DNA from: Vicugna vicugna
Lineage: Eukaryota
Length of the DNA stretch: 64,000 bases
Reading direction: 5' to 3'
Assembly (NCBI GenBank): GCA_013265495.1
Contig: MU061814.1
Coordinates: forward strand, 5,769,684 to 5,833,683
The position numbers and the translations under genes are program-made. Positions 14,101-17,100 of the stretch are shown in pieces. The notes beneath the pieces were generated by a model, which saw only the letters and a program-made list of their open reading frames with translations, searched no databases and was not told where the DNA came from. Each line of letters opens with the position of its first letter. Positions within the stretch are counted from its first letter, which is position 1.

Positions 14101-17100
14101 CCTCTAGGGGAACACAGTACTGGATGCTCCGAGACCGGCACCGTATGCCGCCCTCTGCTGCTTCGTTGGGGCTGGACATGTGCTGGACGCTCAGGGACCT
14201 GGCCTTGATGAGCCCTGGGGCCTGGGTGCTGGTGGGTGGGCGGCAGGGCCGAGGCGAAGGGCAGGGGCTAGCTGTCCCAGCCTCTGAAGGCTGCAGAGTG
14301 GGGACCTGGTCCGAGGGCGACTGGCAGGCCGGCTGGGGCTTGACTGGCTGGTCTGGGCCACAAGACGGGGAGGGGGAGGGGCCCCTGCTTTCGAGGTGGG
14401 CCTGCCCTTGGGGCTCCGGCCAGAAGCGTGGGGCACTGGCCGCCTTGTGCATGGACTCAATGAGCCGCCGGCAGTTGTCCTTGACCACGGATGGCCGCTT
14501 CATGAGGAGCAGGCGCGGCACGACGTCCAGGAAAATGCGGCGGACCCAGGCGGGCATGGTGTGCGTGCGCGGGGAGCGGTGGTGCACGTTGAGCACGAAG
14601 ACCGTGATGACGATGGAGAGTGTGACGAAGATCATGGTGAAGAGCAGGTACTCGCCGATGAGCGGGATGACCAGCGAGGTGGACGGGATGATCTCGGTGA
14701 TGAGCAGCAGGAAGACGGTGAGCGAGAGCAGCACGGAGATGCAGAGCGTGATCTTCTCACCGCACTCGGACGGCAGGTAGAAGACGAGCACGGTGAGGCA
14801 GGAGATGAGCAGGCAGGGGATAATGAGGTTGACCGTGTAGAAGAGCGGCAGGCGGCGGATGACGAAGTAGTAGGTCACGTCCGCGTAGACCTCCGCACAG
14901 CAGTCATACTTCTTGGTGTTGTAGGTGCCGGCGGCGTTGACGATGGCCCACTCGCCGCTCTCCCAGTAGTCCTTCAGGTCCACCATNNNNNNNNNNNNNN
15001 NNNNNNNNNNNNNNNNNNNNNNNNNNNNNNNNNNNNNNNNNNNNNNNNNNNNNNNNNNNNNNNNNNNNNNNNNNNNNNNNNNNNNNNNNNNNNNNNNNNN
15101 NNNNNNNNNNNNNNNNNNNNNNNNTTGCACCCGCCCGTCGTGGAAGAGGTGGGCCTTGGTCAGGTGGGTGACAGCAAAGTCCCCGTCCGCGCTGGGTAGG
15201 AGAGAGAGCGTGGTGAGACATCCCCGCCTGCCGCAAGTGCACCCCCACCTCCCGGTGGCTCTGCCGGGGGTGGGGTGGGGCTGGGCTGGGCCTGCGGCCC
15301 ACCTCGGCTGTCACCCCTGCGCCGGGGCCGACATACGGCGGGGACTGTCTCCGCCATCCACACCATACTCGACACCCACGCTTGCTGCTGGTGATGACAG
15401 TGGTCATCTGGGCTGAAGCAGCCATGTCGAGAGCTCCAGACGCACAAGTGGCCCCCGGGCAGCACTCAGAATGCCTCATCCCCTGCGGTCACTCGGGGCT
15501 GGGCCAAAGTTGGAGTGAGACCTATCTGGCCACCTTCTCCTGCTTCAGACCGTGCGTGCCAGTGACGCTGAGCACTCAGCGCCTTCCCCCACTGACCCTT
15601 CCCTGAACCTGAGGCAGGAAGGACCCCCCTTCCTGCACAGGTGAGAACTCTGGGGCCCGACAAGGCAAAGACCAGGCCAGGACTCCTGAGTGGGACATGG
15701 ACACCACCCATCACATTCCAGGCCGTCAGCCCTCCTGCCTCCCCCTCAGCCCGGGGGCCTTGTCCACAGGCCGGGGTGGGCGGCAGGGTGAGGGGTGCTG
15801 TCCCCGGCCCTCCTGCTGCGGGCAGAACACCCAGCCCGCAGCCCTGGTGCTGGGCCTCCCTGACAGTGCCATCCACCTCAGTTTTCTTCACCAAAGATGT
15901 CCACAGAGGGGAGGGCCACAGCACAATGAGAGGGGAGGCAGCCAGCCTGTGGGGACACAGGGACACCCACACACAGCTCCCCAAGAGTCCCGTTTGCTCC
16001 AGAAGGGGGCCACTCTCTCCTTTGCACTGGATGCGCCTGGCCCCCAGTCTGGGTCCTGAGTGGGTGTAACCTGGACCTTGGGGGGCGGGGAGGGGCACTC
16101 TGTCAGCCTCAGTTTCCCCATAAAGACTGAGCTGTCCACTCCGGGTGTGGTGCCCACAGACACACGGAGGCGACAGCCATCCCCCTGCCAGCTTCGGCTC
16201 TGAAACGTGGCCTGGAGACCTCCTCTCGTCCCCCCAGGACATCCCCGCAGACAGCTGGTCCCAGGACTGAGGCACTGGACGCTGGTCATCACGCTTCTTT
16301 GTCTCCACGACATGTGCTGAGGGTGCATCTGGCCCCAGGAGGTCCTCAGAAGGGCCCGGAGCTGGCCTTTCGCTCTGTACTAGGGAGCCAGCCGCCTGGC
16401 AGAGCCCCAGGAAGGAGCAGCTCTCCCCGAGGGATGTTGTCACCACCGCATCAGTCCTCGTTCCTCTTCCCGCAGCTGCTTCTACCATGCCAGCGGAGAC
16501 AAAGCACCTCTCCACACTGCCTGGTCCCACATCCCACTCCCAGCAGGGCTGTGCCCCCGGAAAGCCCAGGGGGCGTGGACGTCAGGATGGAACGGCCCGA
16601 CTGTGAGCCTGTTCCGGACCTACCACAGGAGCTGTGGCCAGCACGGGCGGGAAAGGAGGACCCGGTCCTGGGCAGCCCAGGTTCCTGCTCCAGAGATGCC
16701 CATCCACATAAGATCCCCAGCCCGAGGGGCCAACGTAGGGGAGCCCCCCAGTGGACAGCACGGCCTCTGGCCTGACTTAGCCCAGGATGCTAGGTCCTGG
16801 GGCACGGGGAGCTGGGGGAGCTGAGTGTGAACCCCAGGGGGACGGGGCAGGGGGAACTGGAGGACTCCAGGGTTCAGGGTCGGCCCAGGCGGCCTGCAGA
16901 GGGAGCACAGAGAGCCTGCCCCACCTTCCACTCACCGAGCTGGGCCCCCTTCGCGCCTTCGTGCTGCCCCACAAACCGTCCCCCTCGCACGCGGCTGCTC
17001 TTCCTGCTGCCATGGCTGGAATCAATTAAGTTGGGAAGGAGCCCAATCGTTCTTAATCAAACAGCAGCGTTTTGTAGGTCAGGTCTGACCCTGGGGGCCT

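Follow-up and report, generated by a model that had tools for sequence, protein, structure and literature searches.

An old alpha2-type tract in the ligand-binding loops of camelid CHRNA4, very probably copied from CHRNA2 by interchromosomal gene conversion

We analyzed a 64-kb stretch of the vicuña (Vicugna vicugna) genome, hereafter the window, which carries CHRNA4, the gene for the alpha4 subunit of nicotinic receptors, and within the fifth exon of that gene a block of sequence of the type of the paralog CHRNA2 (alpha2). All coordinates are window positions, and all CHRNA4 features described lie on the minus strand. Exon 5 (13816-15191) encodes the end of the ligand-binding domain, the transmembrane segments TM1-TM3, and the cytoplasmic loop; its cag acceptor and gt donor can be read in the window sequence, its frame is open through the whole exon, and residues 125-588 of alpaca CHRNA4 match it in a tblastn search against the window. 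The neighboring exons are of alpha4 type: exon 4 (18115-18225) matches residues 93-129 of alpaca CHRNA4 at 100%, versus 76% for alpaca CHRNA2, and exon 6 (11027-11149), which holds TM4 and the WLAGMI tail, matches residues 588-628 of alpaca CHRNA4 at 100%. Over 13.5 kb, introns included, the gene is collinear with alpaca CHRNA4 at 99.5-99.7% identity and with CHRNA4 of the Bactrian camel at ~95%, and three residues separate the encoded protein from the alpaca RefSeq entry; these values fit a very close relative of the alpaca within the llama group. The earlier note had also assigned the locus by synteny, and in our analysis that assignment relies on this identity. Within exon 5, a run of 138 N (14987-15124), equivalent to 46 codons in frame, hides the 5' part of the block together with its 5' junction, as judged by comparison with Camelus. 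Because the blocks aligned on either side of this run are separated by exactly 138 bases in the alpaca record, we regard the run as an equal-length mask and not an assembly gap; it is one of three such runs in the window, the others lying at 3131-3174 (44 bases) and 9079-9254 (176 bases). With its loop C cysteine pair, its long alpha4-specific cytoplasmic loop, its WLAGMI tail, and its open frame (the 46 masked codons excepted), the gene is, by its sequence features, an intact CHRNA4 ortholog, predicted to be expressed and to form functional receptors with beta2.

Our evidence base consists of assembled DNA records and protein records. Positions in exon 5 were given an index i counted from the A of ADGDF, with window position equal to 15190 minus i, and the genes fetched are all collinear over the exon's first 216 codons. 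The genes compared were CHRNA4 of alpaca, Bactrian camel, dromedary, cow, blue whale, and pig, and CHRNA2 of alpaca, cow, blue whale, and warthog. We defined 44 diagnostic nucleotide sites, at which each paralog is uniform and the paralogs differ, from cow, whale, and pig or warthog, with no camelid contributing to their choice; the window and alpaca alpha4 were scored at unmasked columns only, and the masked part was judged from Camelus. Scored in this way, camelid alpha4 is a mosaic. The 8 diagnostic sites at index 5-52 are all alpha4-type; among the 29 sites at index 69-312, 27 are alpha2-type, with one or two of another state and one alpha4-like base at index 258; and the 7 sites at index 425-647 are again alpha4-type, with one exception in Camelus. 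This 8/29/7 pattern is alike in Bactrian camel and dromedary and in the unmasked parts of the window and alpaca. A longest run of such length appeared in 3 of 200,000 shuffles of the diagnostic sites, and a chance origin of the contiguous alpha2-type block is excluded.

The visible part of the tract in the window (14868-14986; codons 68-107 counted from the same A) encodes the last part of the beta8-beta9 loop (loop F), then strand beta9 and loop C, cysteine pair included, and 14 of its 15 strict diagnostic sites are alpha2-type. On its 5' side, the flank within exon 5 (15125-15191), which corresponds to the loop E region and ends in RVQ, is alpha4-type at 8 of 8 diagnostic sites, and the 22-residue peptide read at 15125-15190 is the same as in other mammalian alpha4. 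On its 3' side, the flank (13816-14833) comprises TM1-TM3 with SECGEK and the long alpha4-specific cytoplasmic loop, which has no alpha2 counterpart, and all 7 sites at index 425-647 are alpha4-type in the window. The 3' junction, refined with less strict sites, falls in an interval with no informative sites (14834-14867): the last alpha2-type sites lie in codon 107 (TAC versus GCC), and the first alpha4-type site past the tract is codon 119, which reads GTC as in whale and pig alpha4, versus ATC in every alpha2. The switch from alpha4 to alpha2 type at the 5' end occurs in Bactrian camel and dromedary between index 66 and 142, within the stretch masked in the window. The resulting length is 181-291 bp, and in the window the tract runs from somewhere in 15048-15124 (masked) to somewhere in 14868-14834. 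Mammalian conversion tracts usually measure tens to a few hundred base pairs, and the length found here falls within that generally known range. An earlier note, made from the window sequence alone, had placed the replacement in the beta8-beta9 loop and loop C; both are indeed replaced, but the replacement is not confined to them, as the Camelus tract reaches further 5' across the preceding Cys-loop/loop B stretch, where the paralogs hardly differ.

At the protein level, the frame at 14864-14986 begins with the 13 residues that the earlier note had read and runs to DVTYYF, and the human sequences given there agree with solved structures: human alpha4 (5KXI) has VDQLDF, GEWV, RKYECC, and DITYAF, and human alpha2 (5FJV) has VDLKDY, GEWA, KKYDCC, and DVTYAF. 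The eight residues named there (L, K, Y, A, N, K, D, and V) are all alpha2-type, and L, K, A, and D discriminate the paralogs in every vertebrate sampled, from gar to mammals; its assignment of the flanks to alpha4 (15125-15190 upstream; SECGEK, the long cytoplasmic loop, and the WLAGMI tail downstream) also holds. Over the 40 visible codons, twelve residues differ from pig and whale alpha4 (cow is slightly different). Compared with ordinary alpha4, the substitutions that can be read in the window include, numbered as in 5KXI, Q174L, L175K, F177Y, V184A, D187N, and V189A, followed by R195K, E198D, P205A, I207V, and A210Y, and Camelus has additional alpha2-type residues in the stretch masked in the window. 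The agonist-contacting residues Tyr197, Cys199-Cys200, and Tyr204 are retained, and the vicinal cysteine pair of loop C, a hallmark of alpha subunits (14897-14902), is kept inside the tract and aligns to C199-C200 of 5KXI. Some codons have switched by more than one base, for example at codon 92, where CGC has become AAG, and at codons 71-72, where CAG-CTG has become CTG-AAG. These switches and a few alpha2-type third positions (GTC at codon 83; indices 143 and 155 in Camelus) speak for a transfer of DNA; purely synonymous diagnostic sites are scarce.

Two positions within the tract vary beyond this pattern. At codon 86 (14930-14932), the window and Camelus have GCC (Ala), and the alpaca record has ACC (Thr), a threonine that restores the alpha2 N-A-T glycosylation sequon inside alpha4; the first base of the codon is the single alpha4-like base (index 258) within the block. 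The alanine codon is likely a later point change, since the G lies in a CpG, and the change may be recurrent or polymorphic. The loop C proline after Tyr204 (YPD; 14882-14884), otherwise conserved, is labile in artiodactyls: it is alanine in camelid alpha4, alanine by another codon path in ruminant CHRNA2, and serine in bovine CHRNA4.

The event is not private to this genome and is common to Camelini and Lamini. Beside the window, chromosome-scale assemblies of alpaca (GCA_048564905.1), Bactrian camel (GCA_048773025.1), and dromedary (GCA_036321535.1) carry the block in their DNA, each with substitutions of its own in and around the tract, and the block also occurs in older, independently produced CHRNA4 protein records of wild camel and dromedary. 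With the first 50 residues as the query, matches at 100% were restricted to CHRNA4 of Camelus ferus, C. dromedarius, and C. bactrianus, followed by cattle and deer CHRNA2 at 98% and then by CHRNA2 of many vertebrates, and no CHRNA4 of a non-camelid mammal was among the best 120 matches. Alpaca CHRNA4, which falls in the camelid protein cluster, bears the patch as well. In an alignment of 21 non-camelid alpha4 and 18 alpha2 proteins, from gar to mammals, every non-camelid alpha4 has VDQ(L/M)D, GEWV (GEWL in pangolin), and KYECC, and every alpha2 has GEWA and KYDCC, with VDLKD in all but pangolin (VDLND). The combination of alpha4 flanks and an alpha2 patch was found in only 18 entries, all camelid, among 394 fetched proteins, and the alpha2-type block is absent from ~100 non-camelid alpha4 proteins, from gar to human. 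Among solved structures, the 51-residue piece of the window is matched best by the ectodomain of human alpha2 (5FJV), with human alpha4 (5KXI) behind it. Fourteen DNA runs from 7 studies contain 85-97% of sampled words of 13800-16000, a measure without specificity for the junctions.

The phylogeny of the tract conflicts with that of its flanks. In the DNA tree of the tract, camelid alpha4 lies inside alpha2 as sister to alpaca alpha2 (support 84/91), whereas in the DNA tree of the flanks alpha2 forms a separate clade (100/100); the protein tree of the tract, with 44 taxa, likewise places camelid alpha4 inside cetartiodactyl alpha2 (95/90). Under the approximately unbiased (AU) test on proteins, constraining the tract to group with artiodactyl alpha4 was 51 log-likelihood units worse (p-AU 4.8e-4), and constraining it to group with placental alpha4 was rejected more strongly still (p-AU 1.9e-9). 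For the flanks, grouping with placental alpha4 was not rejected (p 0.41), and grouping with artiodactyl alpha2 was rejected (p 6.6e-4). The flank test was run on 44 taxa; a split uniting camelid alpha4 with all alpha2 is uninformative on an artiodactyl-only flank tree, because it is expected when camelids are basal.

The donor paralog is CHRNA2, and it is intact. Alpaca CHRNA2 is alpha2-type at 41 of the 44 diagnostic sites and in another state at 3, never alpha4-type, and since it is alpha2-type at all informative sites the exchange was non-reciprocal. In one alpaca assembly, CHRNA2 and CHRNA4 lie on separate chromosome records (CM108750.1 and CM108738.1, respectively). Just past the mask, an ATG (Met) codon at index 204-206 is common to camelid alpha4 and alpaca CHRNA2 only, with Thr in other alpha2 and Arg in alpha4, and this shared codon points to the camelid's own CHRNA2 as the donor. 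Over the whole tract (255 nt), Bactrian alpha4 shows 14 differences from alpaca alpha2 and 13-19 from other alpha2, versus 42-45 from other alpha4; the normal distance between the paralogs is 45-46, and over the tract 13-16 positions separate the alpha2 orthologs of different artiodactyl suborders. Over the visible 120 bases (codons 68-107), the window shows 9 differences from alpaca alpha2 and 25-26 from cow, whale, and pig alpha4, and alpaca alpha4 differs from alpha2 of the same assembly at 7 (a manual count on the alignment). Given this ~6-8% divergence from alpaca alpha2, the tract is old and was not pasted from alpha2 reads.

Window and Bactrian alpha4 differ at 3 visible positions, all synonymous, and Bactrian camel and dromedary differ inside the tract at two, both third codon positions and both in the part masked in the window. 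This distribution of changes fits purifying selection on the tract after the event, as in a working gene under constraint, and its conservation between genera suggests function. Since Camelini and Lamini share the tract, the event came before the separation of camels and llamas; its age is probably several times that of the split, which would put it early in the camelid lineage, on a clock that uses very few sites and a split date from outside knowledge.

We propose, with high confidence, that the block is a fixed, old tract of interlocus (non-allelic, interchromosomal) gene conversion from CHRNA2. Ectopic conversion from this unlinked paralog was already the reading of the earlier note, and it gains support from the contiguous block, the discordant trees and AU tests, the intact donor on another chromosome, and the Met codon. 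A break or heteroduplex in exon 5 of CHRNA4 would have arisen in the stem lineage of camelids and been repaired on the homologous CHRNA2 exon, and the coding sequence for the Cys-loop/loop B and for TM1, nearly identical in the two paralogs, would have supplied the homology. Some 181-291 bp of alpha2 sequence would thereby have been copied into alpha4, leaving the donor on the other chromosome unaltered, and the converted allele would have been fixed before camels separated from llamas and alpacas and would have gathered its own substitutions since. The predicted product retains the N-terminal half, channel, loop, and tail of alpha4 and has alpha2-type loop F, strand beta9, and loop C, with the stretch just before loop F also alpha2-type in Camelus.

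Convergence, in which selection would have driven camelid alpha4 stepwise to alpha2-like residues with no transfer of DNA, is very improbable, and we reject it. Loop C is a plausible target of selection, most diagnostic sites alter the amino acid, and parallel changes of the loop C proline to Ala or Ser have occurred in ruminant alpha2 and bovine alpha4. Such a process, however, would need ~27 changes in one contiguous block and none in the flanks, several of them requiring two or three bases within one codon, and it would have to reproduce alpha2-type third positions, including GTC at codon 83, and the donor-lineage-specific Met codon common with alpaca alpha2; no partial version occurs in any other vertebrate alpha4 sampled. 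Less probable still, and likewise rejected, is an assembly chimera, the alternative on which the earlier note had laid most weight, in which alpha2 reads were mis-joined into the CHRNA4 contig at long identical stretches of the paralogs. On the TM1 side, the paralogs share identical stretches of 40-60 nt at which a short-read graph could switch paths, and in the window the block adjoins an N-run, but the length of that run equals that of the alpaca sequence there, and the likely 5' junction in Camelus has alpha4- and alpha2-type sites 4-9 bases apart with no long shared word. The same error would moreover have to recur in the alpaca, Bactrian, and dromedary assemblies, each with its own substitutions, and in the older wild-camel and dromedary protein records, and the alpaca alpha4 tract is not identical to the alpha2 of its own assembly (7 of 120 bases differ). 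Least credible of all, and excluded by the vertebrate-wide alignment, is retention of an original alpha4 state from which other mammals departed, for although Y, N, and K of the eight residues also occur in non-mammalian alpha4, the alpha4 of gar, frog, turtle, bird, platypus, wombat, and all placentals has Q-L, GEWV, and KYECC in place of the camelid L-K, GEWA, and KYDCC, and the tract nests inside cetartiodactyl alpha2, not at the base of alpha4.

Several observations weigh against gene conversion from the camelid's own CHRNA2, or blunt the case for it. The 5' junction is hidden by the mask in the window and bounded in Camelus only to index 66-142. Few diagnostic sites are purely synonymous, the paralogs being already much alike at silent sites, and the argument for a transfer of DNA consequently leans on the multibase codon changes and on contiguity. 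A looser AU test of all alpha4 versus all alpha2, which gauges only how deeply the tract nests in alpha2, was weak: that split was rejected only weakly for DNA (p 0.023) and was not rejected for protein (p 0.14). At the protein level, the tract is marginally nearer to ruminant alpha2 than to alpaca alpha2, because of the parallel Pro-to-Ala change and later changes in alpaca alpha2. Lastly, camelid CHRNA2 is represented in our comparison by alpaca only.

Other exchanges may have occurred in this gene pair. Exon 5 of CHRNA2 in the pygmy sperm whale (Kogia breviceps) holds an alpha4-type run of ~295 bp at index 275-569 (record positions 8094-8388), with 18 of 20 sites alpha4-type and alpha2-type sites on both sides, extending from the second half of loop C through TM1-TM3. 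In the one assembly available to us, and compared without Kogia CHRNA4, this run looks like a conversion in the opposite direction, from alpha4 to alpha2, and we count it as a precedent within the same gene pair in favor of gene conversion in camelids. Across TM1-TM3 (14543-14830, codons 120-215), the paralogs of one species differ at 4-10 of ~55 four-fold sites, and orthologs of different artiodactyl suborders differ at 4-11, i.e., at no fewer than the paralogs do. Such likeness between ancient paralogs suggests either repeated homogenization or very strong constraint on silent sites, and it supplies homology for exchanges of this kind. CHRNA2 of porpoise, dolphin, and the steppe mouse (Mus spicilegus) has the alpha4-type SECGEK where most alpha2 have SDCGEK, which may reflect a single parallel change or further small exchanges between the paralogs. 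Elsewhere in the window, eight long open reading frames at 44-63 kb gave no Pfam matches.

Interlocus conversion between dispersed mammalian paralogs is known to leave a short non-reciprocal tract in otherwise orthologous sequence, an unchanged donor, and discordant trees for tract and flanks, with homology provided by conserved coding sequence, and the camelid tract resembles such cases in all these respects. It differs in that the paralogs are ancient and lie on different chromosomes rather than being recent tandem copies, and in that the agonist-binding loops of a conserved receptor have been rewritten and long fixed throughout a family. Relative to ordinary mammalian CHRNA4 (human 5KXI and 6CNJ), the camelid gene has the same locus and exon structure, the N-terminal half as far as RVQ, TM1-TM4, the long cytoplasmic loop, and the WLAGMI tail, and departs from it by the twelve residues in the 40 visible codons, as counted against pig and whale alpha4. 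CHRFAM7A, the human hybrid derived from a partial duplication of CHRNA7, is likewise a nicotinic gene remodeled by recombination between duplicated sequence, but it is an extra fusion gene produced by segmental duplication, whereas in camelids a single-copy ortholog has been overwritten over a short tract. Laboratory alpha2/alpha4 chimeras are comparable as well: in the available part of the account by Jin and Steinbach (2015, PMC4684330), alpha2 extracellular segments are placed in an alpha4 backbone, and ectodomain swaps shift the half-maximal effective concentration (EC50) of acetylcholine several-fold and alter potentiation by steroids. The fine swaps described in that part concern the D-to-A and E loops, upstream of the camelid tract, whose start coincides with or follows the final residue of the laboratory E-loop segment, and the camelid combination (the B, F, and C side) is not among the fine chimeras found there. 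A search of the literature on CHRNA4/CHRNA2 gene conversion, interlocus conversion of nicotinic receptors, and camel CHRNA4 found no report. Events of this kind are well known; the present case, in the binding loops of a conserved brain receptor and fixed family-wide, appears to be new.

The alpha4beta2 receptor is the principal high-affinity receptor for nicotine and acetylcholine in the mammalian brain, and mammals show hardly any variation in its binding loops. Loop F belongs to the complementary face of the subunit, and in the receptor form with three alpha4 subunits it contributes to the alpha4-alpha4 site. Residue T126 of alpha4 is one of three residues named as critical for the action of NS9283; the aligned residue is changed in Camelus, and its codon is masked in the window. 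Loop C caps the agonist, with Cys199 at its tip (PMC11836552). We offer tentatively, as a rather unlikely extension, that camelid alpha4beta2 receptors, with an alpha2-type principal loop C and complementary loop F, would differ in agonist, antagonist, and alpha4-alpha4-site pharmacology, perhaps kept by selection (e.g., on sensitivity to nicotinic plant alkaloids), and that, taken together with Kogia, exon 5 of CHRNA2 and CHRNA4 would be a recurrent hotspot of interchromosomal conversion. Such a hotspot, if real, would let mammalian receptor subtypes trade their ligand-binding loops.

A whole mammalian family carries a natural domain swap in the binding loops of alpha4. The region swapped includes the flanks of loop C (R195K, E198D, and P205A) and loop F on the face of the alpha4-alpha4 site, and the swap bears on the question of which residues, other than those of the conserved aromatic box, make alpha4 and alpha2 differ. 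It also indicates that ancient, unlinked receptor paralogs can still exchange coding sequence, and such exchange can mislead orthology calls, selection scans, and ancestral reconstructions in the nicotinic receptor family. For camelids themselves, the swap may matter for the pharmacology and toxicology of nicotinic drugs and alkaloids.

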